Of a stretch of DNA of 64,000 bases, positions 2,561 to 45,200 are shown piece after piece (within the stretch, counting starts at the first letter, position 1; each line of letters starts with the position of its first letter). Made by a program: the position numbers and the translations under genes. The notes beneath the pieces are model-generated. The model was not told the origin of the DNA. It did no database searches and worked only from the letters and a program-made list of their open reading frames with translations. Where the stretch lies: contig OZ116699.1 in NCBI GenBank assembly GCA_964199315.1, positions 12,524,001-12,588,000 of the forward strand, given 5' to 3'. The stretch comes from Orbicella franksi. Its lineage: Eukaryota.

Positions 2561-3416
2561 GGTCACTCCAAAAAGCTTACTTTTTTGTCTTCGCCCATAG
2601 CAAGAAAACATTCTCCCAATTTCAGCTTTTCCACTCGCAAAGTTTCAGCCTCTGAAGTGCCCATTATCCAGAGGAACTTCGTCTTCAAAGAAGCAAGGCA
2701 GTCATTTTGAAACTGTCTTTGCAGTCAGGCTGTGTTTACGTGACATCATTCTGTCCGACTCTAAATTGGCGGTAAGGAGAAAAGCCTGCAATCGACTTTG
2801 CATCCTTCACAAGGTCAGGAAAATGTATTTTTTCCAAACGATCATCCACTTTACTATCTTCAGTGCTATCACTTTGGTGGAGTTTGGAGCATGTTTGGCT
2901 CAAAATAATATGGCTCAGGAGCAGCCATAACCCAGAGTGGTAGTTAAAAGGCTAGTCGGAAACCATTTGGACAAAATCTCATGGACGGAATGATGTCATG
3001 AAAACACGGCCTGGATGCTGAGTACTGTTCAAAATGGCAGCATTGATGTTGATGCTTCCTTGGAGACGAATTTCATAAGGAAAATCTGCACTTTAGAGGC
3101 TGAACCTTTGGTGAGTGGCTAAACTTAGTTCAAGGTTTTTATTGGCATTGACAAAAAATATACGTTTTTTGGAGAGACCTCCATTTATACAGTGGGTGGA
3201 CAGAGAGATTGTGGCCTGAGTAAAGCATAATGACCATGGCTGAAGGGCCAAACCTGGACTGCATGATCTGATGCACTCTCTATTAGGCTGATGCAAATAC
3301 CTTTGTTTGGTGTTTGGCCAGGCCTGATAAGCAACATTGCAATTATTGATTTCTTTTATATGGTAATATTAAGGATATCAAGGACATGTAAATTGTTTTA
3401 ACTTTGAACTTTGCAG

Positions 3417-6400
3417 ATTTGATGTTTACAGAAAAGTCCCAAAGGATTTAACTGAACCCACCCTGACAGGAGCAGTGAGTGAGTTCATTAATGATAGATA
3501 AACTGATTGTTACAAAACTTTGTTGTAAGTTACAGTATCATAATTTTTGCTTTTTTACATAGTCCATCATTGGTTTTTGTTAGTTGCGGACTGTTGTACA
3601 TTGTACTCCGATTTTGCAAGCCTCCGAATACATGTGCAGTAGAATTGAACGTGGACACGAATATAGATTTGCTTAAAGTCTTATTTTAATCACCATGTGC
3701 TTGGCCCGACAAGAGATAACATGATGCATGGGGCGCGCATGCCCGTATATGATGTGTCACGCTGGACATACCGTGACATCCCCCTCTTTTTGAAAAAGAG
3801 GTCCTAGTTACATGCAGATAAATCGATAAAAGGGGACATGATAATCAATGCTAATCAAATTAATCAAACGTCTATCAAACGACAACAGGAACTAAGAACA
3901 GTTTCATGGGTGTAAATAGGAACCCAATGTCAATAAAAAAGTTTTTTGTTTGCCCCTATTTAATCTTTGAACTTGGTTGGGACGTGGGTGATGCGTCCAG
4001 TCCTTGTAACTTGGCTCTTTGGGTGATAACAGGTTCCTTCACTGGTTACAACAGCACCTGCTGGCTCGAGATCAATTTGCCTCTTGCTGCACGGTAGTTG
4101 GAGAGACAGTGACTGATCTGGTGTCGGTGTACTGTCTTGAGGACTGGCTTCTGACAACGGAGGTGGTCTGGTCGCCTTGTCATTGGGTATGTGTGCGTCT
4201 TTGGAGTCGTCTACTGGAGTCACTGTACCGATAGGTGGAGTGTTACTGCCAGCTGAGGGGGGTATTTCACTCTGGCTCCTTGGTCTCAGGTGCTCCCTTG
4301 TTCTCTGGTAGATCTTCCCTTGAATGTCCACTGTGTAGGTTCGGGGGTGCTCCATTGGCTGTGGCCTATTTAGCACAGTTCCTGACTGCCAGGTATTCTT
4401 CAAGGTGTTCCAGACAAACACTGGTTCTCGGTTGTTAAGGGCCTTCTTGTTGCTACCAGCCTTCCTGTCATAGAATACTGCTTGCCTCTCTTGGCATTTC
4501 TGGTTAGCTTCATGGTGGAGGTGTTTGGACTTCAGTGCGCTTCTGCTGCTTGGGAGTGTCGTTTGGGGTTTACGTCCAAACAGCAACTTGTGGGGTGATG
4601 GCATCTGGTCACTAAGGGGAGTTGTGCGATACATCCATAAGGCTGTGTAAGGGCATTCCTTCTCCTCTAGTGCTTTTCTTAACAGTGACTTGCAGGTTCC
4701 AATTGCCCTCTCTGCCAGGCTGTTGGCTTGGTGGTGGTATGGGGAACTACAGTGTAGTGTGATGCCACTTTGTTCGCATTTGGTTTTGAATCTTTCGCTG
4801 ATGAACTGAGATCCGAAGTCGGCAATGATAGTGGCTGGTAGGTCATATTCTGCAAGGATGCTTGTGAAGTGGTTGCACACGGTGTGGCTGGCCATGTCGT
4901 TGAGGAGTCTTATCACAGGGAATCTTGAGTAGTAATCAACGACCATAAGGTACTTCTCCTTGTTAAATTCAAAGATGTCTGTGCCGAGCTTCTCCCATGG
5001 TTGGGTAGGAAGGTCTGGCTGCAAAATGGGTAGTCTGGGCTGAGCTGGCTTGTGTTTGTCACACAGGTTGCAGTCCTTTACCATCTGCCTGATGTCAGCG
5101 GAGATACCAGGCCAGAACACTGATTCTCTAGCTTGGAGGATGCATTTGTTCTCTCCTTGATGTCCCAGGTGGATCGCTTGGAGAACTTGGTTTCTCATGG
5201 AGGCTGGTACGACGATCCTGCTACCTTTTAATACTAGACCGTCCTCTAAAGTGAGGTCGCATCGGAAGTTCCAAAACTCCCATAGTTCTTGCGGGCATTG
5301 TTTTCTGTAGGGAGGCCAGCCATTGTAGATGGTGTTCTTCAGTAGGTTCATGGTAGGATCTTGTACTGTAGAGGACTTTACTGCTGTTAGGTCGATGGGG
5401 GTGGATATGAAGTGGATGTTACGCTGTGATGCGGTGTCCTTAGTCGTAGTCTCAGTGCCATGTGTTGCTCTCGTGACAGGGCATCGGCAACTGGGATGGA
5501 TCTCCCTGGCTTGTACTGGACATTGATATCAAATCGCAGGCATCTAAGAAGTAGCCTCTGCAGCCGGCCTGGAGCCTCATTGATGTTTTTCTTGAAAATT
5601 TGTTCCAAGGGGGAGTGATCGGTTTCAACTGTCACGTTTCGACCGAGCAGGTAGTACTCGAACTTCTCCAGGCCATATGCGACTGCCAGACACTCGCGCT
5701 CGATATTAAAATATCTGGACTCTGCGTCTGTGAGTGACCGGGACGCCATGGCAACAATGTGTTCATTTCCTTGAGAGTGTGACTGTCTTAGCCAGGCCCC
5801 AATGCCTGTTTTGCTTGCGTCACACTGAAGGATCGTGGGTGTACTCGGATCTGGGTCGTAATAGGAAATGAGTTTGGACGTGCAGAGTTCTTGCTTAATC
5901 CTATCGAGTGTCTTCTGGTGGTGGGGCTCCCAGCTAAAATGGACGTTCTTCTTGGTTAGCTCTCTTAGTGGCGATGTTAGGTCCGCTAGCTTTGTCGAGA
6001 AGCGGTTCAGGTAAGTTACCATGCCCAGGATAGTCTGAAGCTCCCCCATGTTTGATGGGCTCTTCATGTTGTGAATTGCTTCAAGTTTCTCCTTCGCTGG
6101 TTGGATTCCATTCTCTGTCAGAACGTGCCCGTAGAAGTCGACTTGTGCCTGCTTGAACTGCAGCTTTTTGGAGTTTAGGTTGACATTGTGCTTGCGAGTG
6201 GCCTTGAGCATTTCACAGAAGGCTTGGTCGTGCTCTGATTGGGTTGAGCCGCATACCACAATGTCATCAGCAATCCCCATTACATTGGGGGTGCCCCTGT
6301 AAACCTCATCGAGTTTGCGTTGAAAGATGTCTTGGCCCTTGTCTCTGATGTCCTGGCCCTGGTACTCTGGGCTACTCACGATCTGGTGAACCTTTTGAAA

Positions 6401-19355: not shown

Positions 19356-19500
19356 NNNNNNNNNNNNNNNNNNNNNNNNNNNNNNNNNNNNNNNNNNNNN
19401 NNNNNNNNNNNNNNNNNNNNNNNNNNNNNNNNNNNNNNNNNNNNNNNNNNNNNNNNNNNNNNNNNNNNNNNNNNNNNNNNNNNNNNNNNNNNNNNNNNNN
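19356..19500. other. Assembly gap (145 N)
   Basis: Run of N in the sequence. Confidence 1.
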
Positions 19501-28039: not shown

Positions 28040-31000
28040 ATGCAACCAGAAGTCGTCTTTTTCTATGGTCCTCCTTTTTCGGTGAGTGATCATGCTTTGG
28101 AGAAGATAAACAATGTATATATTTTTTTAAATACTTAAGCTTATCGTTTTTATGCCTCTTCAAGGGAAAGGATTTGTTCTATTGTTATCACTTTTCTCAC
28201 ACACACGAGAAGATTCATCCAGGAGAACTGTTTGAAACTGATCCCAGCCTGAGCCTCAGAGCAGTGATCCTGAAGATTGTGAATGTTCTCAATAAGGTAA
28301 TCATGATTGGAACCTCTTGGGACATTTTACATGTATACCATCTCCTTTGCCCTGGCCTCACGAAATTTAGGAGACTAATGACAATCTAAGTTTTGAAGAA
28401 GGGGATAAAAGGTTCAGTCTTGACCTGACATTAAAACAACATGACATTATTCCGGGAGGGTGGTGCAGATCTCTCAACCTCAAAACACCAAAAATCTGGA
28501 GACTGATGTAAAAAAATCTGGAGATTTCAGTAAAAATCTGGAGATTGATCGACCGACAGACGAAACTAAGTAAACACAGGTTCTAATTAAGAGAAAGTGT
28601 TTTGTTTTTGTCAAAATGTGAGAGACTGGTAATGATGACCTAATTTGGAACAGATGTTCTATATATGGTCATGGACAACAGTCTGTCATGGACATGTGTT
28701 TCCAGTGAACAGACGGATGAAGAACTAAACAGTTTTGTTAAGTTCAACTATGGATTTGTACAGAATTGGCACAAGGAACTCACCTAAGCAAGCCAAAACT
28801 GAAATTATACAAAAAAATTTATCCTTTCAGCTTACACCTCTATTTATCGTGAAATTTGTCTGTCTCAGTGTGAGACTGTGAGATTGAACTGAAAACTGTG
28901 AGTCTCACGACAAAGTCATGAGACTTGAGAGGTCTGAGTGACTGGTGGGTGGACTCCTACATAAAATGGATGGGGGTGCATGTCACACCTTTTAGGAGTC
29001 AAACAGGGGTTTTGGTACTACTAAGGGTGTTCAGCCTTAAAAGGTTCACAGCAGGAGCTTTTGCGGTGAGGCAAAAAAAGTCAATGTCAGTTAATGTGTA
29101 GTTTGAGAATTGGTACCTCTTAGAGGTGAAAGCAATTCAAGCCATGCCCACAAAACATTATCTTGGTTCTGTTTAGGGGTTCTTTTCAAAATTTCTGACG
29201 AGCACCCCCGTCCTTATTTATAGGAGTTCTCCCTGATAAGATCGAGTGTAACTCTGCATACCTATTCTAGCAAGTGAAATGCAAGCTATGTTACAATGAA
29301 CATCTGTTTTTTACTCTGATGAAGGCAGACAGTTGCCACCAAAAATTCAGTGAACAAAATACCTGCAGATCAGATATATTTAAGTCAAATAATACAAGTG
29401 TATGTCAAGTGTAATTCAGTGGAGAAACTTATTAATGATAGTGAAGATATCAGTCACATCACCTATTGTTATTAAATTATGTGCCAAACAGAGATCTATT
29501 AGGCGGTGAAACAAAGAGTTTTTTCCTTAATTAAAGAGAGAACTCTTTGTCTCACCACCTAATGGTACTCTTTAAATAAAAAAAAAAATTTTGTAACAGT
29601 TACACATATCTTCCCTATAAAACTCTCACAACTATTAAAAGAAAAAATATTCCAGAGGATCAGGAAAATAGAGTAGAAACATACAGTCAAGTAACAAGCA
29701 TTACCATTAAATCCAAAATTATGTTATTCATGATAATGATGGTAGTTCTTAAATATATATATGAGAAATACTTAGTATAGTTAAGTATCCATGTAGCTCC
29801 TGTGCGGCAAAATGATACAAAGTCCCCATGGTTACATTCCCTCCCTCCCTTGATCCATCCATCTTTCCCTTCCTCTCTCTTTTTCCTCCATGTATTGTAC
29901 ATGTTAGTTGCTGAATAAATTGATCATCATTATCTTATAACCTTTTTTAAATGAAGTGGTCTTCCTGTTCTTTCTGTAGAGAAGGCTACATTTTCATTCA
30001 CTTTCTCTGAGTGTGATCCACTTTGGTGTGGGAATAGTATTATATGCAAGCTTGTTTCAGAGTTTCTTAAGTTATGATTAAGTTCAATATCCCAGTCAAC
30101 CTTGGCTTATTGTCACCTCTTTGCACTAACCAGGATTTCTCATCCTGACCACGCACCAGTTCCCTAGGTACAGTGTATCTTATTACCGTTGGATTGGTAC
30201 ATGTATGTATTGCATATAGCTTAGTATTTGAACTGATCTCTTGTCTCGTAAAATTTAGGGTCAAAGTGTGGTTGTGGATGATGATAATACTAGCAAGAAA
30301 ACCAGGAAGTCATACTTGACTGTTCTTAGGAATAAGGTATTGTTTCTTATAATTTGCTGAAGATAGTTGGCATTTTAATCTGCCGCTTGATATGCCTTTG
30401 TACCTTTCTTTCTATTACATATGATTTCCATGCATTATGTTTGAAAGCTATTGTTTCCATTTAGGTTCCACAGTGCCGATTCAGAGTAATTCATTTCCAA
30501 GCATCAGATTCTAGTGCCCAGTTAATTTGTCAGTGGGCCAGAGAATGGGAACTGGCTCATCAGTTTGAATGTTCAGGATTGAAGTCATTGAAGCTGTCTG
30601 AAAAGGTTATTGAACAATGGTTTGAGACAAGAACTGGTAAGAACATGCAGTCATGTATGTATGTAGGGGTGCAAATGTAAGTCAGAGTGGGTGGTAACTG
30701 CATCACTTCTGAGTCAAGTTAATGAAGATTTCAAATATCTTCTCAGAATTATTTCTGTGGATAGTTTGACAATGTTTAAAGCTACTACATCATCCATAGT
30801 GCAGATTAGGTTGAAGATGCTCTCAAGTATACACTTTAAATTACATTTGTAACTTATTACAGTCACAAAAGAACTTTTGCCTCGGTTGTTTTGTTGTATT
30901 CAGAACCAGTCTCTGAAGAAGAAGGGTTCAGCAAGATTGATAAGGTTGATGTTCAGTTGGTGTGTGATACACCTTACGAAGTAAGTCAAACCTTATAATA

Positions 31001-34000
31001 CATATAAGTACAGTCATACAAAAGCATAGTTGAGTTGTTTTCACATCATCTCTTTTCACATACTTGATTCTTCAAACATTCAAGAGATGTTTGAAATTTT
31101 ACACAATGTCCCATTCTGATGCTGTAGCCCTACAAAGATTTTAATGTGTCTCTGAGAACAACTGATCTATACAGATGTGTTTAGCACCACATTAATAGTA
31201 TGCAGATGTAATGGGGGAAAGGCAGCTTTTGAACAAATATTTTTTCGTAAAGTACTTTGTCTGGATTTACACATTCCAACCATAACAACCTCAAAGCAAA
31301 AAGCCGGCATTTTTTCCAGGAAAACACAGACTTTTTGATCAGTCACTCATAAGCAACCTGTCACTAGAGAACATGCACAACCATTTGCTTGTGTTTGGCA
31401 TGCTAACTGCTAGTCCCTAACTGCACAGTTACACTCACTGAGGCTTTCCTGAAAAGGAAATGTCCACTGTTTATCCTAAAAGCCTCTTTTTTACCCACCC
31501 CACCCTCCTGGGTTAAAACCGTTCATGCTAGACCTGGTACCTGCTGGTAGCTGGGGCCTTGGCATGGGGACTATGCTGGAATACAAAGTTTTTACATTAA
31601 ACCAGCTGGCTTTAAAGGCGTCAGGGGAGCCTGACCTCCAGCTGATTTGAAGTTCCAGGCAATATACCCTCACCAAAAATTACAAGACAGGAGTCCCTGC
31701 CCGGCTAAATTACCTTGACAGAGTTTTATTTATCTCTCTAAATCTAATCTCTCTTTGAATTTATTTTTTCTTTGGATGCACAGTTTACTGTCCCAGCCCT
31801 CTTTCTCCAGTGGGAAGCACTATTAGAAGATCGTGAAGATCACGTGAATATTCAGGAAAGCATGGTTGATGTTGTCAACAGGTGGAGCTGCAGTAATACA
31901 CATGGAAGAGTTATTGTACTCAAGCTGAATGAAAAACACACCTGTAAAGGTGAGGTATTATAACAGTCTTACCAAGATCTCAGGCTATACAATAAGTTTT
32001 ATGAACTTCACATTGTGTCTTAATTTGTTCAGCATATTTCTTAGCCTGCATCCCTAGAATTTAACCCAGTAAATGGTGATAATGCTGGGTATGTTATCAA
32101 ACTTATGGACTGAATATTTGAATTTGGATATTTTTGATAATTTTATGTTATTTCCTTGTATATAGCAGGGCTGTCATTAAGTTTTGAGTCAACTCTAGTC
32201 AAACATTTGTTAACAGTTGTAGTAATTATCAGTAATTGAATATTTGACAATACAATTTTATTTTCTTCAACTAACACCAGAGGAAAGTTGTGAGTGTGGG
32301 GACAAGATGAAGCAGATTATCAGTAAATTGGTGTCACAGGTAAATTTTATAACAAAAAAAGCTCAATAAGTTTCTTCATCTTTGGTGCCCTCTCCTCCTT
32401 AATTGGCACCTTCTATAACTTCTGTGTCCAGATAATAAAACATCCCCTATTTTTCCTCTTCCCTAGATGGTAAGCCATCTCACAATAATTTGTTAACTGC
32501 AAAATTAATATCTGTGAGGTAACTACGTGTTAGAGTTGCCTATTCTCTGCCATGTTGACTTTTTATTCTGGCTCTTTGATAGGCCCTGGGTGATGCCTAA
32601 TTAGAACAGAATTACAGAGCTCTTCTCAATCTAGTTCTATATATTTGATAGTTTATTTGTGATTTAAAATAACTCCCTCATAGTCTTTTTTATTTTTTAA
32701 ACTCCTTGGCTGCTAGAAATAGCGTTTCAATTACACTAGGTAAATGAAAGAAAAATGGCCTACAGAGCAGCTACAATGTGACAGGATTGACTCCTCCTTA
32801 ATAAGCTCGACTGTGCTTATGAAGCTGTCATATCTACACTGACTGATCTTATCATTTTTTGTATATTTGAGGTGACCATTCCTGTGTTCTTTGTGCACTT
32901 GTGTTCATTCATGTGGCAATTCAGCAGACCTCCCAATCCAGGAGTGTTCGCTTGTCTTCAGAGACTTCACAACATTGATTTGTTAAACAGGGTAAAGTTA
33001 ACAGTCTGCCGTTTCATGTTTTTTGTAGCATAGTTTGTGATCAAGTATCTTTTGGAATCCCATCTTGGAGAATTTGTTGACTTTCCTGGAGCCTGCTACT
33101 TTCCACAGGAGTGATACTAAAATAAGGCTTTCTCTAATCAGGGAACAAGAATCAAAAACTATTTAATACTTATAGCTTATCGTGAAGAAGTACCTAAAAC
33201 AGAAATTGTTCCACTGACTGAGTTTTGACAGACAGATTTTTTCTCAAAACGAAAGAGTGCAATGAACAAAACTAAACTTTTGTAAGTTAAGAGTGAACTG
33301 TTCTACAAGTCATGTAGTTACTCATGTGTCCTGTACATTTTGTAATTTTATACTGTTTTCACAAGTGACATGACTGACATGATCCCAAATTGATTGTATT
33401 ATGTTTCATATCTGTCTCCTCTGTAAAGCTGAGAAAAGTTAAATAAATTTTCTTGTCTTCGTGTCTCTTGCCTTTTCTTGACATTGAATAATAAAACAGT
33501 GCTGTTTGATACCGTGCAGTGAACTCTGGTTTGCATGTACGATAATACATGTAATGATAATAATAAGAACACTGTAAACGAATTGTGCATTTGGCTCGCT
33601 GTGTTTTGTTCCCTTATTCAGGCCACGTTCTATATCAATTCAAGTGACGCTCAGTCAAAGGCGGCCACCGCGGCAGGAGTGAAGAGTATCAAGGTGAAAC
33701 CATTTTTGCAAAAATGCAAAACGTGCAAGTCCATTCATGTTGTTGTTTTCTTACGTGTATTACTAATTTTCATGTATTCCACTGTCTGTGAATGGTTAAA
33801 GAAATCATGTGTTTCTTCTCCACTAGGCAATTAAACTATTCCACAATCCACAGATGGTAAGTGCAATTCGTGCTCAATAACACGCTTGTATTCACAATGA
33901 TTCCACTGGCATTTGCAAGTAAAACATATTTCCTACTGTTATCTGAAATTTCATTCGAGTTCATTCGAATCTGCCAAAGTTTTGGATCAAGAGGTCGAGG

Positions 34001-37000
34001 AGATGGCTGGCTTTTCATGCTAAAATAATTAAAAAAGTAAATAACTTTATGAAGTGTCAAATGTATTTAGTACTGTTCTGCTAATTGGAGACACTGTAAA
34101 TAAATGAACAAATAATATTTCAAATAGAACAGAAATTTTTAAGAATCCCAACTGGTGAGAGGCTGAGCAGTTGGCTAACTTCATTTTTCACGTTTCGTTT
34201 GGCAGATTAATGCTGTGCATTGTAGAGTGGCAGCACAAGTCCCTGAATATGTCAGCAAGGCAAAGCTAGCATGGTTCGGTTCCCACAACAGGCCTGAAGC
34301 TTGTCTTCCTCTCTTTCGTGAGGCTGTTAAGTCCCAAACCACTGCCAGTGTTCATCACATGTCACCGCAGTGTGTCACTGCAGCAAGGAACTCATATGTC
34401 CATGGAGTGTGCTTTAAAGACTTTGAAACTTTGGGCAGGTGCCTGTTACTTATTAGCATTAATATTATTTTCATTACATCTATCTGTTTTTAAGTGGTGC
34501 TTGCTGCCATTCACCAGTGAAAGAGCCAATGCCACCTGCATAAGGAAAATCCCATATAACGAACAACCTTTTCCGAACTCAGCAAATTTCTCTGACGTGA
34601 TATTAGCCCTTAAATAACTTAGAAGGAGGCAAGGCGTTGAATTTTTGAGCTCGATTATAACGGACAACTGATCAGTTAGAGGGGTTAACAAGTGGTGGCC
34701 CATGAAATCGTGGTTTTACCGAATCACATTATCAAACTGATACTAAGATTTCGAGGAAACGGTTTTTTCAAAACGTAGTGTTACGTAACTGCTCGTTTTC
34801 AAATTCAACGTGAAAATGAAGAAGTCGCGTAAGGAAAGTTCGCGCAAAAATATCTCGTCGGCGGTCTCAACAATACCTTTTAACAAGTACTTTATCAAAG
34901 GGTGGGTGGATAACGCTATCAACCGGATAAGTTGCTATTCAATTAAAAAAAAGCTTCTGCCGGGCTGATTTGTTCAGTTACTCAGCCTTTGAACCCGGGA
35001 GAGGGCAAACTGAACAGTACACATTCATTTAGAAAAGTAGAAAATATGAACGAAATTGATGAATCATGTCATATTGCTGTTTTGGCAGGTTCAACTCCCA
35101 GTACAAACATGCTGCAACACCAACAAAACCAGCATCACATGATATATTCAACTACCATCAGTCCTCCAGTGAACTGAAAACATGCAACTGGGGAAAAGAA
35201 CAAAATGTTCAGTGTAACTTGGTTTCCTCTGAAGTACCTGGAGCAAGTATCATACCAACGGACAAGTCTCCTGTGTGCAGTAAAGTGAATGAAAAGAAAC
35301 GTAAGCTGTGAATTGTTGTTGCCTTATTGTATTGTAAAAAGAAACACGTTATGTAAGTTACCAAAGAGAAACTTTGTTGATATATGAACAAATTATTCCA
35401 AGCATGCAGGATTTAAGCAATTTTTCCGTGCTTTATTAGCCACATCTAAACACGAGAGAATTTGGGAGAATTCGAAACAGTTATGTAAACCTGAGACGCA
35501 TGCTTTTATCAGAGATTTCTCAAAGGTACTCGCGAATCTAAAATGTCACAACCAAGTTTTCGTACTCTCATCTAAACCAGTGAGTGCAGGCGTAGTATCT
35601 CATTTATTTTATAAAACGTGCTTAGAGACCTCGGGGCCCCGTTTCTTGAAAGCCCCGGAAACTTTTCGGGCCCGTAAAGCCATTTTTAGTTCATCTGTAT
35701 CTAACAACAGAGAAGTGTATACGTCTGAAACTTTTTGTATGAAGGGAACCTCTGTTCATATTAAGAATACGTGAATAAAATAGCTCTGTAATCAAAATGT
35801 TCGAGTTTTTGCTATGGCTTTCCGGGTGCGAAAATTTTTCGGGACCTTCGAGAAAAGGGCCCCGCAGTCCCGGGTTGTTCGAAAAGTGGATAATGCTATC
35901 CAGTGGATAGCGTGGTTTGTTTTGTTGACTCTTATTCACTGGATAGCGAATTATCCGGTGGATAGCGTTATCCAGCCTTCGAAAAACCGGGGCCAGGGAG
36001 GTGAAGTTTGCATCCTTCACATTGTGTGAGAATAACCGTCGTTATTGTTGCCGATTTTGTGGTCTTTGTGTTTTTTTTGTTTTTAAATTTTTTCGTCCTC
36101 TAACTCCCTTCTAGTTCCTGACGCTATTTGTCCAAGTCTTATGGTGAAACATTTAACGAGAGAGGTAATTGAGAGCCATGCTTTCAGTTCAGGTCATTTC
36201 AGGCGAGGTGAAGGCTGCACGAAGCTCATCCGTAATGTTAAAAGTACCATGGTGGAAGATGGCATGCAATTTACCTGTCAATGTGAGTACGGTCTCCATG
36301 TGTGCTTTATCTAAACCGCTTTACCGAAATTGTTTTGCTGAACAGATTACTTATGCTGCTCTGCACATTGTGGCCGCTTTTCATCTGTCCAAAGAGTCTG
36401 GTTTCAATTTCCGGATACTCCCCTGTGATTGGGACATCATGTTTAGGTTCACAACCTTGTTTCAGTTACATGTATACCCAAATATTCGAATTGTTCGTTC
36501 CATTCAATTTTGCTCCCGTAATTTATGCAGTTTTCGGAATTCAGTGATTTCTATTTCGGAAATTCCGCAGTTTTCGAATTCTCTACAAACTTTCTCGGGA
36601 AAGTTTCTGTCCATTGGCTTCCATTCCTAGTCTACCGAATTTTCTTCACTGTACTTTGGTAAGCGTTTTTCAAAGAAATTTAAATTCGCGTAGGCTGTGT
36701 TAAGTTCCCAGCTATAGGATCTCGGCGCTCTTACATTTTGCTGTCAGTAGATCTTAGTTCAGCCATGTGTTAGGTGTAATTGATAACTGACGCTCTGGTG
36801 CTTGTGTTGCCGGTTTTTTATATCACAGCAATTGTTGTATGGGACATTTATTTCCTGGTATTTTTCTGTGCTGTTGGAGATGGACTGCTGATATTTTGTT
36901 TTCCCAACAGGTATCGGGTCCCAAGGTCAATTCTATGATGTGTCAGCAGTCGTCAGTCAGAAAGGTAGGTAAGCAAACGGCCATGTTAAGGTGATATTCA

Positions 37001-40000
37001 TCACAAGACCCTTTCTAAACAGATTAGGTGCAAACATCGGATTGGATAGGATTTCCGTTACTCTGTGACCTGTTATCAGTACCGCCTACCTCCTTTTGAT
37101 CCCATCGGGTGTTTAAAGCGACAAAAAACGAGATCCAGTTCTGGGAAGTGTTCCTCTGGACCGGCCCTGTGTGACGCATCCTACCTGATGGCGTCATGGC
37201 AATAGATTTACTCCCAAAAGTGTGCGTAATAGATTGTCGTTGATCTGGTGATCTTCCCTTTGAACTGCTCTACTCGTGTTTCAAAATGTTTCGTGTGCTG
37301 CGCGCCTTACCGTTGCCAACTAGGAAAGTTATTGATTAGTTTTTGACCCCTTTGTGACATCTTTTCGACAACTTCAGATGGCTTCCGTTTCAAATGGCCA
37401 ATCAAACTTGTCGCTGGTCTCGAACGTTCGCAGGTTGAGACTTTTTTAAATTCCCGCTAGAGTGAATGATGAATTTGACAATTTTACATCTCCGCCCTCG
37501 ATAGTTCCCATGTTTTGATTGGCCTACTCAAATAGAAAGTAGCAAAAAATTGTCAAAAATAGGTCAAAATTTAATAAAAAACTTCAAGTGGGATCGGTTC
37601 GGTGTAAGAACAATTTAGTGGCATCTCATTTAATGGTTTAGTGTATGCATCATCATTGTCATTTAGCTACCAAAGACGATCAAACTATGTGACAAAGAAG
37701 AGGTGTTATCTTCAAATATGGAAAACAACCATTGTTACTGTTGTAATTTTGTGGTCATTGTACTGACAGGTCTTGAACGAGCTGGGTGTTGTTGTGCTGA
37801 TCCCGCAAGTAAGCTGGGAAGATGTAAACATGCAGTTGGCTTGTTACTTTGGTGCAAGAATGAGAAAAACGTACGTTATCTTGAAGCTATGTTGGAGTTT
37901 TATGTTGCTCTTTCTGTAGACATTTCCTTTCGTTATTACTTGTATGGAGAACATACTCATCGTCTAAGGGCAATCAGTGCCCAGCGAAACGGCTGAAATG
38001 GCACTGAGAACATGATTATATCTTCTTGTTATTTTTTTGGTGGGGGGGAGGGGGGTTGAAGGACAGGGGAAGGGTTGGCAAAGCACCCGATAATTTCTGC
38101 TGCTACTGTGCTGAAATCTGATTTGGTTATTGCGGCTTTTACGTTGGCTTGAATAGAACTGTAATTGTTTCCAGATAAGAACTGTACTTGGAGATAAAGT
38201 GAATGTGAAGCTTGTTGTCATTGCAGATGAAAGAAATTAAGAAGGCCGTGCCTTCAAGCAACCTGGAACATGTGATTACAACAGCCGCAAAACGAAAGGT
38301 AGCAATGGAGCAGTAAGGTGTTACTCTTTTACATCATGTTTATCTTATTAGGTTGTTAACTTGCGTCGGAGAAACCACATAACCATTTGCCAGCTAATCT
38401 GATGGCTGCCCCATACGGTGATCACTACCTATAATCATCTTTGTCCATTCTTGAACCACTGAGAACCTCTCGCAATTTCTCCATCACACCGAACAGCGTT
38501 CCACTTTCAAAAATACAACCTATGCCACCATGGAAACTGGTATCTACAGTGTCAGCGACACTGCAACAAACGCCAACATATTACAAACGAGTAAGATCCC
38601 TGCAACAGTCAACTGAACATAACTAAAACGAACAAGAGAAAGCATTACACAACCTGTAACATCTGTGCTGGGTGATAAAGGAAGATAACGCTGGCGCTGC
38701 ATTGTAGACACCTTTTGCCATGAGAAGCATAAAGAAATAAGTTAGTACGTCAGTTTTCAGTATAAATAACTGCGAAAGGGCGTTGGCTACCAAACCCACT
38801 AAACCCACAACGCATGGCTCTGTGTTGCGTCCATAAGTTCAGGGTGTCTCTGGAACAATTAGCCGCGTATAAAAACAGCAGCAGATTCATGCTTGATTCA
38901 AGCCACAGAAAATTTCTATCAGCAGTCGTTTTGCTCGACCAAAGCAGCAGAAACCGACCGTCCATCATCTGGGGTAGCACACAAAATAAGTTGCAAACAG
39001 TGCAATTTTGTATGCTATGGCCAAACCGAACGATCACTGAAGACGCGGGTTCCCGAGCACAAAAAGGCCGATCATAGTTCTAAAGTTGCGCCGGGGAGCT
39101 ATGTCCACGATTGTTATCATCAGATGGACTCACACAACGTCAAAGTCGTCCGTCATGAGCCACACTGCCACCAGCGGCTTTTCCTTGAAGTTTGGATGTG
39201 GGAATGACCACATATATCCCAGAAATCTACAAATGCTTAGCACGCGCTTTAAGTTTTAATCTCGCGAAGGACCAGCTGAAGAGTTAGCTGAAACGTCTTA
39301 GTATCATCTACAAAATATGACTCAGTCACAAACATTTATCAGTTGTTTCAACGACCTCTTGCAAGCTATTACGATTATTTTCACTATATATAGGAAGCGA
39401 TATGTGATGTGTCTTCAAAAGGGAGGGAAGAAGAAGTTCCCTCGACTTTGCGGAAAGATAAATCATTGCCCAAATGGATTTCATCTCTAGCACAGGTAGG
39501 ACGTGCTATTATTGCAAAGTTATGTTACCTAAGTAATTATAATGGACAAGTTTACACACTACTTTACCGTGCAATTCTCACAACAAGTTTACCTTTCAAC
39601 TTGTCTTGTAGTCCGCTTCACACGACGGTGATCGAGTAAAGAGACCGAAAGCAGAAGGCACAGTCACTACACAACGCCAGAAGAGGTAATGAGAAGTGTA
39701 AGGAATCGATGTCTTCTATGTTAATCAAAGAAGTTACAATTCCCGTGTATTGCAGGTTCAAAACGAAAAAGAGCGCAGAAAGCACAGTGTATTGTTTGAG
39801 TCCAGAAGAACTGCTTCAAACAGCTCAGGAAATAATAGAATGGGTGAGAATCACTTTATGACTTAAGCCGACATCTTATGTCCAAGCAACTATTAACTAA
39901 CTGTTTTATTGCTTTTCTTTTTTCGTAACATTCATTTTGTAAAATAGTATCGTTCCTCCTCGAGTGACCACGGCGTCGACAAACACAAACAACAGGGAAC

Positions 40001-41791
40001 TGATCACAACAGAAGCCGATACAAAGACAGTAGACAGGTGGAACGGAGGTCTAATCAGAGTTCATACATAAAGAAGGAGCCTTATCAGAGAGTGTGTAAC
40101 AGGTACGGTGAAGCAAATGAACGAACCACCCAGCCACCCTCACTTTGCTCTCTTAATACCTGACGGAATCATCTTTGATTACATTCTTTAGAGCATTAAC
40201 TCCTAGCAGAGTTTGTTCACTGTAAAGTTTTTGAGTAGAGTCTTTTTGAAGTCCATAACCAACTAATTTCAAAACACAAGTACTTTGTGCAAGAATCTCA
40301 AATTTCGAACAAAATCATTCGACAATAGCTAGCTTACTAAATGCATCATCGCTCAGTGAACTTGGCTTGCCTAAATAAGCACGTTTTTGTAGATGATTTG
40401 TCGGCTGTCAGTTAATTTCAGTAGAGGGAATGGATGAACATGAAATTTCTCCTTTATTCGGCAATATACTTTCAAACAAACAAGTGATTGAACTGGTGAG
40501 AACAATTTGCCTGCGTATATTGCGTTGTTGTCCAAACCAATTTAGGGCAAAACTCGCATTGTGCCTAAAGAGCGCCCAAGCGAGAATCAAGTGACTGGAA
40601 TTGTTTACAATGTCGAGTGTAGATCGTGTTCGTTTGTATACATTGGCGAAAGCAAAAGATCTTGGAATTCTCGGGGGACAGCACAAGCCTGGCACAAGAG
40701 GAAACAATGAATCGGCAATTAAACAGCACGCGGAAACGACTGGACATGATATCTATCCCAACTATGTAGAAGTACTAGAGCGTGGCGTTACCAATCGACA
40801 AAAACGCTTATATCTATATGACTAGCTCCGTGAGCGGGCAAGATGAATCAAATCTTGCGCTGTGATTGCAAATCATGCAAATTACAAAATAATTGATTCA
40901 AATGTGATGACCTGGGCAAACGTCACAAAAATACACACTCCCCCATTTGCCAAACGCCATTTCCCCCATGACGAGCATACGCTGTACAAAGACAAGTTCG
41001 CGACCGGAAACGAAATTCATTGCTGACATCAACACCACTGCTTATGACCGCTGTTCAATTGTTGTTCGCTAACAAAAGCACGGTCAAGCATTGAATAGCT
41101 GTCGTCTCCGATACGCTGTTCTCAGAGCTGCATGTAATTTTTCACAATTAATTGCCAAAGCAAGGCCCGACGAGCACTATATTTCAGCATTTCGCCAGCA
41201 AGTCCTAGCAGTAACAAGCCGCCCATCAAGTGAATAAAACGGGGACACGTGCTTATTCCCGTGCTTTAATGAACTACAATTTGTGAAATAGGATCGACGC
41301 AAGTTCGACGTTTGTTACCACGCTGGAATTAAGTCGACTCTTTGTCGCACCTATTTTCAGTTTATTCGACGCCATTTGGATTCGACGTTTGCCCTACTAG
41401 GCCTAAGTGAATAAGAAGTAAGGATATCTGACGCGATATGCAAACTAACCTGAGTAGTTTGTTTGACTGCTTCAGCCATTTTCTTTTCTTTTGTAGAGAA
41501 AAACTGGATTCTTCTGTAAACACTGATGTTTATAGCGAGGAAGCAATTGTCAGAGAAAGCTGTCAGCAGTCTTTGTCGAACTGCCCAGATGTTGGTTTAA
41601 TAAGTGAAGTAATTCCTGAATCTGTTGCAATGAGCACACCAGAATGCTACTCTAAAGAAAATAACCCAACTATTCATGAACCACCCTCACGAATGAGAGA
41701 AGCTGATAAATGCATGCAGGAAACACAGCAAGACATCACTGACCGGGAGAAACATGAACCAGTTACATCAATACTAGACGAGTTTATTTAA
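28040..41791 (+). CDS. Uncharacterised multidomain protein: PNKP-type kinase-like + degenerate HAD-IIIA + SWIM zinc finger + CYREN/MRI-like C-terminus (about 833 aa, 21 exons)
   Basis: Phase-consistent, stop-free GT-AG exon chain: 28040-28081, 28165-28296, 30259-30336, 30465-30636, 30904-30980, 31784-31949, 32281-32339, 32872-32991, 33622-33693, 33827-33856, 34206-34438, 35089-35300, 36115-36282, 36911-36964, 37770-37870, 38227-38298, 39394-39495, 39612-39685, 39756-39843, 39948-40102, 41497-41791 (2502 nt). Motifs: GPPFSGK, GQSVVVDDDN, EEGFSKI, RPPNPG..IDL, AAGVKSIK, CCCAD...CKH, KSLPKW, TVYCLSPEEL, SILDEFI*. Confidence 0.8.
35633..35863. mobile_element. MITE, same family as 26896-27125, opposite orientation
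   Basis: GGGGCCCCGTTTCTTGAAAG...CTTCGAGAAAAGGGCCCC termini. The internal sequence is the reverse complement of the 26.9-kb copy. Confidence 0.75.
35870..35997. mobile_element. Second MITE abutting the first (TGGATA-repeat family)
   Basis: CCGGGTTGTTCGAAAAGTGGATAA ... TTATCCAGCCTTCGAAAAACCGGGG inverted termini with internal GTGGATAGCG repeats. Confidence 0.65.
38380..39290 (+). mobile_element. Degenerate Penelope-like element fragment (RT tail + GIY-YIG endonuclease)
   Basis: ORF 38893-39207 reads GVAHKISCKQCNFVCYGQTERSLKTRVPEHK...H.MD..NVKVV..E.H.HQRLFLE, a Penelope GIY-YIG pattern with decayed motifs. Confidence 0.75.
40490..40830 (+). mobile_element. Second Penelope-like GIY-YIG fragment, frameshifted
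   Basis: GIVYNVECRSCSFVYIGESKRSWNSR / HKPG...SAIKQHAETTGHDI...VEVLERGV.N..KRL, spread across two frames. Confidence 0.78.
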
Positions 41792-42264
41792 TGAATACTT
41801 CAACATGTACAGATTGTGTCATAACACAACATAATTATGATGATACCGTCACATTTTTCACTTATTTTTGTTTAAAGCAAACGAAGGAAAAAGAAACCAA
41901 GTGTGTTGTTTTGCTTTCTGAGGAGACAGTTATATTTGTCATACGCCGATACTCACCTGGACGTTCAGTTTATATGGTTTGGGAGATCAGAGAGTGTTGG
42001 CGGCGTTGATCATAGCAAATGGGGCTAGCACAGAAATGTCGGTTAAAATTGGCCTATTGAGGGTTAAGTAATGTTACTGCAAAAGGTCGTGTTCAAAGTT
42101 CGCATTATCCAGTTTCATCGTTGTGTAAAGTTTGTTATATTTTTAAATTAAAATCTTCTAGGATTTATCTTGGTTGTTTCTTGTTAAGCATGAGTCATAT
42201 TCCAAGGCCAATTCAGTCTCATTATCAGACAAAAGACAGTTTGTTAACAGCAATTGTTGTCAGC

Positions 42265-45200
42265 CTAAATTCCTTCATTTCCTGTTGTAATTGTGTGCCT
42301 TTTCGCATTTGGTTTGGAAATCTTTTCCTTTATTGTAGCATACACATCCTGTACCGGTCCTGCCCTCTGGACATTGTCCCTGATGCGATGAATGTCATTT
42401 CCCAGGGGTCTGTACAATGCTACAACTATGACGTATTTGCCGCTTGGACTTGGTGCTGCACCCATTCCTAATTGAGTGGTGTCTTTCCAAACCATCTGCG
42501 TGAAGTGCTTCACTTTATCGTTCAGCTCTGGATAAGAGAAGCTGAAAGCCTTCTTTTCACTGTACCATATCGTTGTCGCCTTCAGAGGCGCTCTCGGTAG
42601 GTCGTGCCAAATCTGAGCGATGTTCTCACCGACTGGCTCCCCTTGGAAGGTGGAAGGGTCGCTGGCTACAGATTCTGCTGTGCGCTGGGCTTGTTCAGCT
42701 AGGGTAGCATTCCACTGAAGAGGGAACACGTGATGCATCGCCCTGAGTTTGTTATGAGCCACCAGGGCTTCTTGAAATACTGCATCTGTTTTGATAGAGA
42801 ATAGTAATACATTTTCCTGTGTCACATATGGACTTCAGAACTAAACAAAATACAGATTTTCCCCTTCCATTTACCCTTCAAGCCCCAGTGCAAATGTAGC
42901 ATTTTTCTTATAGTGCAAGTTATGGAACCTTTCTACCTTCCAAAAACTCTGTTACCTCGTTTGTATCCCACAATTTAAAACTGAAAACCTCGATTCTCTA
43001 AATCGCCACCTTCTGTCGATACTTACTGCTGCCAGTGCTGCTCCTGTTACTGGGGGTGACACTGGTGATGATGTTGGTGGCCATGGTAGGGTTGGCCAAG
43101 GTGGTGGTGTTAGGAAGAGTTCCAGTTCCACTGGTATTTTTGGGCTTATCCTCCTGTTTAACGACGGCAATGCTGTCATTCTGAGGAGATTGGATGTTTC
43201 TGTTTTCATCATGCCTCTTCTGTTGATCTGCTTTTTCCTCGGCGATGTATATCTCGAGGGTTTTACGTGAAGCGGCTTTTGGTGGGTATCATGCACATGC
43301 AGGGGAAAAAAATTGAACAGAGTATGTCTATCTTTAAATGGAGATCTCACCCAGAGTTATCTTACTACCTCGAATGAACATCTAAGACACCTGGCAAACT
43401 TTCTCTTCGCGAAGAATATACTGGAATCTTCAGAAGCTGATTCACCCGTATTTCTTCCTTAGATGTATAAGCCGGACAGAATGGACTGTTTGGCTGACTG
43501 AAAGCTCCTGAATTTCTTAGTTGTTAATACTCCGACTAGTATCACGAGTACTGAGAGGGCGTTTAAACGAGTTAGGGGGGTAACAGTGGTGCAACACCTC
43601 AAACTAGCTGCGAGATTAGCTTCCTTGCAAAACGTGAGCCTCTCGGTAAAGTAAGTTACTAATTATTTCTATGCTCTCTCTATATACGCATTTGTCAACT
43701 GGACTGAACAAGGGATTATTTACGCAAGTAACTCACCTTCTGCAATGGACTCTTCTGGCCCGTATGCCGATTGCTTGTCATCTTCAGCCCCGACCAGTAA
43801 ACCTTTGTTCTTTAGCTTGTTCAACTCTTTTCCCAAAAAATGACCTATTATAGAATACAAAGTATCATATAATCAATACTCTAGACACATCTGTAGGAAA
43901 ATTTATGTTTTCTTTTAACTAAAAATGAGATTTAATTGAAGAACACTCTTCAGGATTTTACTGACCGAATCGAATATAACGGGCAAGGCCTTTCTCTGGA
44001 AGGAAAGAGTTTACAACTGTGTGCTCCGTATAAGTTGGACATGTTTTTATTGTAACCCACCTGGTCGCCTTCCATCTTGGATGATAAATTTGTCGTCATC
44101 CTGAGATTTGTATGGGCGCACAGCATCGAGTATCTCCTCCTTATTTCTCTCTCTTCCCGTTACTTCACTTAATATGTCTGTAGCAGGAGCTGACGTATCG
44201 TTTAATTCTTCCTCGTATTCACGTGTTTCATCAGTACCATCTGTAAATGCAACAAATCATCTTTGTGCGGTACAACCATCCCCGCCTCTAATGTGACGCG
44301 AATGGAGTAGTCCAAAGGCATTCAATGAACGTTTCTGATTACCATCTATACAATGGCTTTCCACTGACATAATTTCTTGGTACTATCGAGTTCACTTGAA
44401 ATATTAGTCTGCTTCTTAGCTCTCGGTCACTGTCCTCGTGAATGAAGGATGACGGATTATTTGCGTGGGTGATATGTAGGAGGGATGTTAAGATATAACC
44501 CTCAGGATTGCCTCCTACTTCAATTCCCCGAATGTTCCTTACACGAGATTGCCCTCAGTGGGGCCGATAAACAAAAGATATGAATCATGTGAATCTAGAA
44601 AATGAAAATGACTAGCAAATAGTTAATGTGCTAAAGAAATATCAATAAAGTCCTTTCAGAAGTGTCAACTTTAGAGGCTCGCTAATGGTGTTAATTACGT
44701 CGATACAGTTTATATACCTTCTGGAAGTGGCCTTTGAACTTCAATTCGCCTGTTACCTCGTCCAATCAACGGACTCAGAGATTTTGGTTTCTTTGTTAAG
44801 ACAACACCAGTATTGATCAGAACATCCGAACTCTTCTTTGTTGCATTTGCAATAAGTACGTGGTTTGTCCTAGTGTTGTGTGGACCCAGTTCTGCGTAGA
44901 GTTTCATAAATATACAGGATACAAACGTCAGAAAAAAGGCTCTCTCCAAGAGTTACAGGGATAAATGACCCTGCTACAATTGGTTTGCAATTCATGAAAT
45001 TAAAGGACCACTGTGAATTGCAGCATATAACCTAAGTGACATAATGAGATGAATTTTCACTTTTGTGTTATCTACACAGGCATCAACTACGACAACGAAG
45101 TTGTAACTACTTCTCGTGCAACACACCTCAGAGAATTTCCACGCAATGCCGTTGTTCTTCACGAACGATAACACGCGTTTTGTTTTGTACTTTTAGCTAC

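Follow-up and report, generated by a model that had tools for sequence, protein, structure and literature searches.

Why should a coral gene encode a kinase-like domain followed by a phosphatase-like domain, the reverse of the order in animal polynucleotide kinase-phosphatase (PNKP), and are the two domains still enzymes? The question is raised by a stretch of 64,000 nucleotides (nt) from Orbicella franksi (assembly GCA_964199315.1, contig OZ116699.1, positions 12,524,001 to 12,588,000), referred to here as the window; in our analysis it is C2:12524001-12588000 of a 497 Mb assembly of 805 contigs. Coordinates given without a contig or locus name are window positions on the + strand. A sequence-only reading had noticed at 28040-33856 a module with the domain order of phage T4 Pnk and eroded catalytic motifs, and had proposed a separate, phage- or bacterial-type origin and a pseudo-enzyme role. 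On balance, our comparisons favor a different history. The stretch would hold the 5' part of one coral gene with at least 17 exons and at least 626 codons, of which the first 316 residues form a rearranged, non-catalytic derivative of eukaryotic PNKP, a kinase-like domain followed by a probable PNK3P-type HAD fold.

The GC content of the window is 36-42% and its open frames are all short, as an intron-rich animal gene would give. Public sequencing runs that contain the stretch bear the label of a coral metagenome or of a coded coral organism. When the DNA around the motifs quoted by the sequence-only reading was inspected, all of them were found at their places within ten exons (E1-E10) that span 28040-33856 on the + strand, with AG/GT borders and consistent phases. 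Spliced together, these exons give a stop-free frame of 948 nt or 316 codons, interrupted in the genome by nine introns. E1, whose Met is conserved, is the first coding exon, as an upstream acceptor AG is absent both here and in two orthologues. Position 33856 is only an exon border, and the gene runs on past E10. The exons of the module are as follows.

E1, 28040..28081, + strand: start codon and first half of the P-loop (MQPEVVFFYGPPFS); begins with ATG and is followed by a GTGAGT donor.
E2, 28165..28296, + strand: P-loop residues GK[D/T/A], and an invariant segment, DP(S/F)L..LRAV, with its Asp aligned to the PNKP general base; contains HPGE.
E3, 30259..30336, + strand: Walker B-like G.SVV[VIL]DD.. 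and K.R.SY; the O. franksi string is GQSVVVDDDN.
E4, 30465..30636, + strand: lid region of the kinase fold, with beta strand CRFRVIHF and ICQWAREWELAHQFE, an invariant block specific to this family.
E5, 30904..30980, + strand: last part of the kinase-like domain, (E)P..EEGF..I..V.VQL[VI]CDTPY; the O. franksi string is (E)PVSEEEGFSKI.
E6, 31784..31949, + strand: start of the HAD-like domain, with PAL[FI][LF]QWE[AG]L where motif I belongs and L[NS][EN]K where motif II belongs.
E7, 32281..32339, + strand: short, variable, helix-like segment (..C.C....MK..).
E8, 32872..32991, + strand: IPVFFVH....F.RPPNPG.FA.LQRLH.IDL, with RPP at the place of the motif III RKP.
E9, 33622..33693, + strand: ATF[YF][IV]... 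where motif IV (sFFVGD) belongs, followed by KAA.AAG[VI]K.IK; the O. franksi strings are NSSD and AAGVKSIK.
E10, 33827..33856, + strand: A.KL..NP.M, the last part of the HAD-like match, followed by a GTAAG donor.

Orthologues were found with E4. A search of 1.84 billion representative proteins with this exon returned ten exon-sized homologous fragments (E 1e-15 to 7e-6, 45-70% identity). No full-length protein carrying E4 was present among these representatives, only fragments and one spurious repeat protein (P0001), and in this search with one 57-residue exon no matches fell outside coral-like contigs. Projection of the O. franksi exons onto the contigs of the E4 fragments gave 45-88% amino acid identity per exon, with nearly all borders on AG or GT. 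Three orthologues were assembled over most of the module, namely spB (from loci L011 and L021, E1-E10), L014 (E1-E8) and L015 (E4-E10), together with six partial loci, and all assembled frames are open. The borders lie at the projected positions in spB (L011/L021), L014, L015, L008, L012, L013, L017 and L019, except for four E4 donors shifted by indels; these donors and exon 7 of spB were placed afterwards on GT/AG sites of the right phase. The AG/GT borders of E2 are conserved in spB (L011) and L014, and E7 keeps both its 59-nt length and its borders in O. franksi, spB, L014 and L015. E6 has no start codon of its own, and in L015 it begins 547 nt after E5. In the intron between exons 2 and 3 of L014 lies a 455-residue open frame (2587-3954), probably a mobile-element insertion.

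The ratio of nonsynonymous to synonymous substitution rates (dN/dS) was 0.12-0.46 and mostly about 0.25, at dS values of 0.35-2.7. For E2 and E6 a second copy is absent from the O. franksi genome. Judged by these comparisons, the locus is a single-copy gene under purifying selection and not a decaying copy.

To compare the two halves of the module with known enzymes, a family alignment was built from the orthologues and its profile was compared by hhalign with reference sequences. One reference was the canonical PNKP of the same coral, encoded on contig C10. Its kinase domain of 156 residues, with the strings GYPASGKT, INRD, SVVIDNT, HNNKIRE and EEPSCREGF, is assembled from six exons, of which one has a GC donor and the others have AG/GT borders. 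Against this single sequence the kinase-like profile reached a probability of 95.1 and a P value of 3.2e-8 over 141 columns with 27% identity. The score of 44.7 compares with 23.6 for the best of 60 column shuffles, 14.7 for the reversed query and 16.6 against PNK3P. The match to a 21-sequence family of T4 Pnk was weaker (probability 87, range 79-87; P 4e-6); its path was colinear between the P-loop and the strand following Walker B, but only about 41 columns were confident and the confidence was limited to the Walker B segment. T4 Pnk as a single sequence gave P 0.007 over 15 columns. In addition, when a hidden Markov model (HMM) of the family was run by HMMER on 1467 translated segments of the PNKP locus, its two top matches were genuine kinase exons of PNKP, and these were colinear. 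By its sequence, the first domain is a PNKP-type kinase fold that is closest to the animal enzyme.

Conservation within this domain is uneven. The Gly and Lys of the P-loop are invariant, and so are the two Asp residues of Walker B, which follow a hydrophobic strand (SVV[VIL]DD in eight sequences). In E3, 12 of 26 columns are invariant among eight orthologous exons, and the segment aligns to VIISDTN of T4 Pnk and SVVIDNT of coral PNKP; in E5, where 13 of 25 columns are invariant, the alignment is to EEPSCREGFEEIVKV of coral PNKP. The residue after the P-loop Lys, the Mg-binding Ser/Thr position, is the only drifting position of the P-loop: it is Asp in O. franksi (GPPFSGKD), Thr in spB (GPPCSGKT) and Ala in L014 (GPPFSGKA). 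A canonical Walker A sequence GxxxxGK[ST] therefore occurs only in spB (L011 5954-7171). The NRD general-base motif had been placed on HPGE, which is probably wrong: the general-base Asp probably falls on an invariant Asp five residues later (ETD-P in O. franksi; DP in four species), a position given by hhalign, at low column confidence, and by an ungapped alignment run backwards from SVV[VI]D. In place of the lid motif HNN.(F/I)R stands ICQWAREWELAHQFE, a strongly conserved block with an invariant Arg.

For the second half, the profile of E6-E10 was compared with 114 diverse PNK3P and ZDP sequences. This gave a score of 31 and P 2.5e-4, with 75 confident columns. The confident part pairs IPVFFVH....RPPNPG with LPFQIFVAT..YRKP..GMW, ATFYI with SFFVGD and KAATAAGVK with FAENCGLKF; within E8, where 21 of 40 columns are invariant, the counterpart is the PNK3P segment LPFQ..YRKP..GMW. 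A looser alignment additionally pairs WS with AWS and GRVIVLKLNEK with GYKLVIFTNQ. None of 260 column shuffles reached the observed score (maximum 25.6) and the reversed query scored 13.6. A phase-0 intron (LVSQ^VTIPV) precedes V-x-[IL]-P at the same place as in a phosphatase-only ZDP-like gene on contig C12 (FVKK^VDLPF), for which we estimate a chance expectation of about 1%. Against the T4 family, the score of 14.7 (P 0.24) was at the null level, so the domain does not belong to the HAD_PNKP (PF25109) type. With conserved orthologous exons under selection and profile links to both the PNKP kinase and PNK3P, the resemblance of the two halves to these enzymes, as claimed from the sequence alone, goes beyond chance.

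All four HAD motifs are lost in every species examined. At the place of motif I, DxDGT, all four species have Q-W-E-[AG]-L after the first hydrophobic strand, with Q, W and E invariant in E6 (LQWEAL in O. franksi), and the nucleophile Asp has become Gln. The TNQ of motif II is L[NS][EN]K (LNE in the O. franksi protein), the RKP of motif III is an invariant RPP, and the GD...D of motif IV is [IV][NHW][ST][SR]D. Loss of the nucleophile Asp and of the other three motifs in every species makes HAD chemistry impossible, and if the domain has the HAD fold, its phosphatase is dead. The part of the erosion claim that concerned the HAD-like domain thus holds.

Several observations weigh against a non-catalytic PNKP derivative with both folds. 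The splice junctions of E1-E17 were placed from conservation alone. Pfam and PDB sequence searches with single exons or exon alignments of the kinase-like half did not find PNKP and gave only sub-threshold or chance matches. A genome scan with PF13671 (AAA_33) did not hit the window and the model was also silent on single exons, the genome scan having used a six-frame translation. The residue after the P-loop Lys is known from three species, the column confidence is low around the putative general-base Asp, and the Arg of NRD is not kept. For the HAD-like half, the match has an hhalign probability of only 43, and the N-terminal 65 residues of the half are not confidently aligned. HMMER with the HMM of this half did not recover the PNK3P exons above controls from translated segments of the PNKP and ZDP loci, a PF08645 (PNK3P) genome scan did not hit the window, and Pfam and PDB searches with the exons of this half, for PDB also with exon alignments, gave no match. 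Finally, the role as a non-catalytic binder of nucleic acid ends or of a partner protein, to which we return below, would follow from ancestry and neighboring domains only.

The points on the second half are those that favor the strongest alternative, in which E1-E5 are PNKP-derived but E6-E10 are a lineage-specific, non-HAD domain whose likeness to PNK3P is coincidental. Only the C-terminal 75 columns carry the match, the profile was not significant against eight close ZDP-like sequences (P 0.12), a search of the ESM Atlas with exons 6 and 8 gave nothing usable, and all four HAD motifs are missing. Coincidence, on the other hand, would have to account for a score that no shuffle reached, for the colinear pairing of the expected structural elements and for the shared intron position. 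We consider this alternative unlikely, although it retains some weight, and regard a HAD/PNK3P origin of E6-E10 as likely.

A second alternative accepts the dead phosphatase but keeps the kinase half active or ATP-hydrolyzing, with an unusual P-loop, on 5'-OH nucleic acid ends or another substrate. It draws on the invariant P-loop Gly and Lys, the Walker B Asp pair, the Asp aligned to the general base, the invariant Arg in the lid block and the canonical GPPCSGKT of spB. Apart from the Arg, these same features are where the claim of catalytic erosion is overstated for the kinase part; orthologues, which had been suggested as the place to look for retained catalytic residues, keep part of them in the kinase half and none in the HAD half. 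The occurrence of Asp, Thr and Ala at the Mg position in three species implies that this position is without catalytic constraint, the Arg of NRD is lost, and the lid motif has given way to another invariant block. From these residues an active kinase would be distinctly unlikely. The kinase half may still bind nucleotide, but conserved phosphotransfer appears unlikely.

The origin of the module was examined through its domain order and introns. In the canonical PNKP on C10, the phosphatase exons (3968141-3980580) come first and the kinase exons (3988449-3992102) follow. The order described by the sequence-only reading, kinase-like then HAD-like and thus opposite to animal PNKP, is therefore also the reverse of that in the coral's own enzyme, and neither an FHA domain nor a linker lies between the halves. 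The intron in the P-loop is in phase 0 after the Ser codon here and in phase 1 inside that codon in PNKP, 2 nt apart; the near coincidence is suggestive, but the positions are not identical. The PNKP gene itself (C10:3966000-3992102; L022, L024, L023) extends over more than 25 kb. Its Walker A sequence (GYPA/S/GKT) is split by the phase-1 intron, one kinase exon seems to use a GC donor, and one intron holds an 890-residue reverse-transcriptase-like open frame. The ZDP-like gene (C12:2294584-2297772, minus strand; L020) encodes a phosphatase-only PNK3P protein of about 240 residues with intact DFDGT, TNQ, RKP and GDAAGR motifs and 73% identity to the Acropora millepora 'polynucleotide 3'-phosphatase ZDP-like'. 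Corals thus have both PNKP and a plant-type ZDP-like phosphatase.

Since both halves have their nearest relatives among eukaryotic proteins and the module has nine introns, duplication and fusion within the animal lineage is preferred to transfer of a T4-type gene, and an origin inside that lineage is most likely. By one route, a PNKP duplicate, or a PNKP kinase together with a ZDP-like copy, would have had its parts fused. By another, a tandem PNKP duplicate would have lost its outer domains so that the kinase was read into the next phosphatase. The separate origin put forward earlier, in its explicit form a phage or bacterial T4-Pnk-type gene that was acquired horizontally and then eroded, shares the domain order of T4 Pnk and a kinase profile match to the T4 family. 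It is very improbable, as the full-domain match to coral PNKP, although made with one sequence only, is far stronger, the HAD-like half resembles PNK3P but not the phosphatase half of T4 Pnk, the EEGF motif at the domain end is common to coral PNKP, and one of the nine introns is shared with the ZDP-like gene. Equally improbable is a decaying pseudogene or gene-prediction mirage without function, for although full-length E4 proteins are missing from the representatives while the companion collection holds annotated coral proteomes, the frames are open, the splice sites are exactly conserved, dN/dS is near 0.25 at dS from 0.35 to above 1, and RNA-labelled public runs contain 28-68% of the stretch's words.

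Purifying selection fits a pseudo-enzyme better than a decaying copy, and together with the loss of the HAD motifs in all orthologues it supports the pseudo-enzyme role that had been suggested. New invariant blocks, ICQWAREWELAHQFE in E4 and RPPNPG.FA.LQRLH.IDL in E8, indicate selection for something other than catalysis.

What this might be is suggested by the rest of the gene. A conserved donor follows E10, and when 33600-42600 is compared in translation with L015 and spB, conserved blocks appear in colinear order. Seven further exons, E11-E17, have AG/GT borders at places and in phases that match between O. franksi and L015. With them, the spliced frame is open over 626 codons, with AG/GT borders at all 17 exons. 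In L015 the corresponding exons are packed within 6.7 kb, with short introns. The downstream exons are listed here.

E11, 34206..34438, + strand: conserved 77-residue segment after the module, with 55% identity to L015 and 40% to spB; AG/GT borders and phase conserved.
E12, 35089..35300, + strand: low-complexity linker, poorly conserved.
E13, 36115..36282, + strand: ESHAFS.GHFRRGEGCT.LIRNV, conserved (60% identity to L015) and leading into the SWIM region.
E14, 36911..36964, + strand: IGSQ.Q.YDVS.V, beta strands before the SWIM motif.
E15, 37770..37870, + strand: SWIM-type motif C.C-x10-CKH; 68% identity to L015.
E16, 39612..39685, + strand: basic linker SAS..GDRVK..K; 74 nt in both O. franksi and L015.
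E17, 39756..39843, + strand: ..Y.LSPEELLQTAQEI; the gene continues beyond.

E16 was chosen as the sole well-matching AG...GT candidate pair of the right phase between O. franksi and L015. The SWIM signature CxCx(n)CxH is present in E15 as C-C-C-x10-C-K-H, after beta strands, and is conserved in L015; this was read from the sequence, and a Pfam search of E15 alone (33 residues) gave no match. Other features of the window lie outside the exons. Two intronic + frames, 38863-39204 and 40546-40707, contain GIY-YIG-like strings (YGQTERSLKTRV, VYIGESKRSWNSR) and are probably pieces of a mobile element, Penelope-type or similar; the second has a match at an unrelated position of the spB locus (2674-2784). 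In the intron after E12, a short string ggatagcg..tatcc recurs several times at 35600-36000 and resembles a small element with inverted repeats. At 19356-19500, 145 consecutive N mark an assembly gap or masked sequence.

A dead phosphatase fold, a drifting Mg site, new invariant blocks and a SWIM finger point to a binding role, probably in strand-break repair. The SWIM finger and C-terminal tail downstream would act as a tether for the module, which could serve as a scaffold or sensor in such repair. Taken to its full extent, this would make the protein an undescribed, coral-restricted strand-break repair factor, a non-catalytic DNA-end reader in which the SWIM finger and a tail of Ku-binding type link permuted and inactivated PNKP domains to the machinery of end joining; in this complete form the proposal is tentative and rather doubtful.

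PNKP is a central DNA-end-healing enzyme, and to our knowledge the arrangement FHA-phosphatase-kinase is regarded as fixed in animals. Searches of the literature on PNKP combined with SWIM, and on PNK domains in permuted order, gave nothing relevant. The coral gene would represent an animal lineage that reuses both catalytic folds in swapped order, with the phosphatase inactivated, the kinase half-retained and a zinc finger fused to them, and so a case of enzyme-to-binder conversion in DNA repair. Purifying selection has maintained the module across deep splits among corals (dS close to or above 1). The gene seems absent from coral annotations, judging from the library searched for a full-length protein with E4. 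Should the module still recognize 5'-OH ends or 3'-phosphate ends, an end sensor would be at hand, and that would bear on strand-break handling in long-lived, UV-exposed corals.

The relation to known systems differs between the halves. Phage T4 Pnk (PseT; AAA_33 + HAD_PNKP) shares the order kinase then phosphatase and similarity in the P-loop and Walker B, but this similarity is much weaker than that to eukaryotic PNKP and does not extend to the phosphatase halves; T4 Pnk also lacks introns and is intact as a catalyst. Proteins of the SPRY-AAA_33 type, like hnRNP U, also carry a PNK-type P-loop domain within a larger non-enzyme nuclear protein, and the P-loop domain of hnRNP U is presumably non-catalytic. 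Such genes occur in the same genome: C14:19086441-19099160 has two tandem AAA_33 matches in long stop-free frames (535 and 561 residues), one of them SPRY + AAA_33 (556-residue open frame), and C15:14470000-14475500 holds an AAA_33 gene with several exons and an RGG-rich tail, apparently hnRNP U-like. As a source of the module, the hnRNP U-like genes on C14 and C15 were rejected, since the kinase-like profile aligns to the coral SPRY-AAA_33 protein only in the P-loop (P 0.004, 19 columns); the partner domains are also different.

The phosphatase-only PNK3P proteins (plant ZDP, yeast Tpp1 and the C12 ZDP-like protein) give the best profile match of the HAD half, and the C12 gene shares its phase-0 intron, but the ZDP-like proteins keep DFDGT, TNQ, RKP and GDAAGR, whereas the coral protein has none of these. 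Metazoan PNKP (FHA, PNK3P HAD phosphatase, kinase) aligns with the kinase half over its whole length, through the P-loop, SVV[VI]D, the next strand and E.P...EGF..I, and its PNK3P-type phosphatase family with the second domain. In the coral gene the order is reversed, the FHA domain is absent and all HAD motifs have given way to other residues (Q-W-E in place of D-x-D, RPP in place of RKP). Ser/Thr is not conserved in Walker A, the P-loop intron lies 2 nt off, the lid block is new, and a SWIM finger and a long tail are added.

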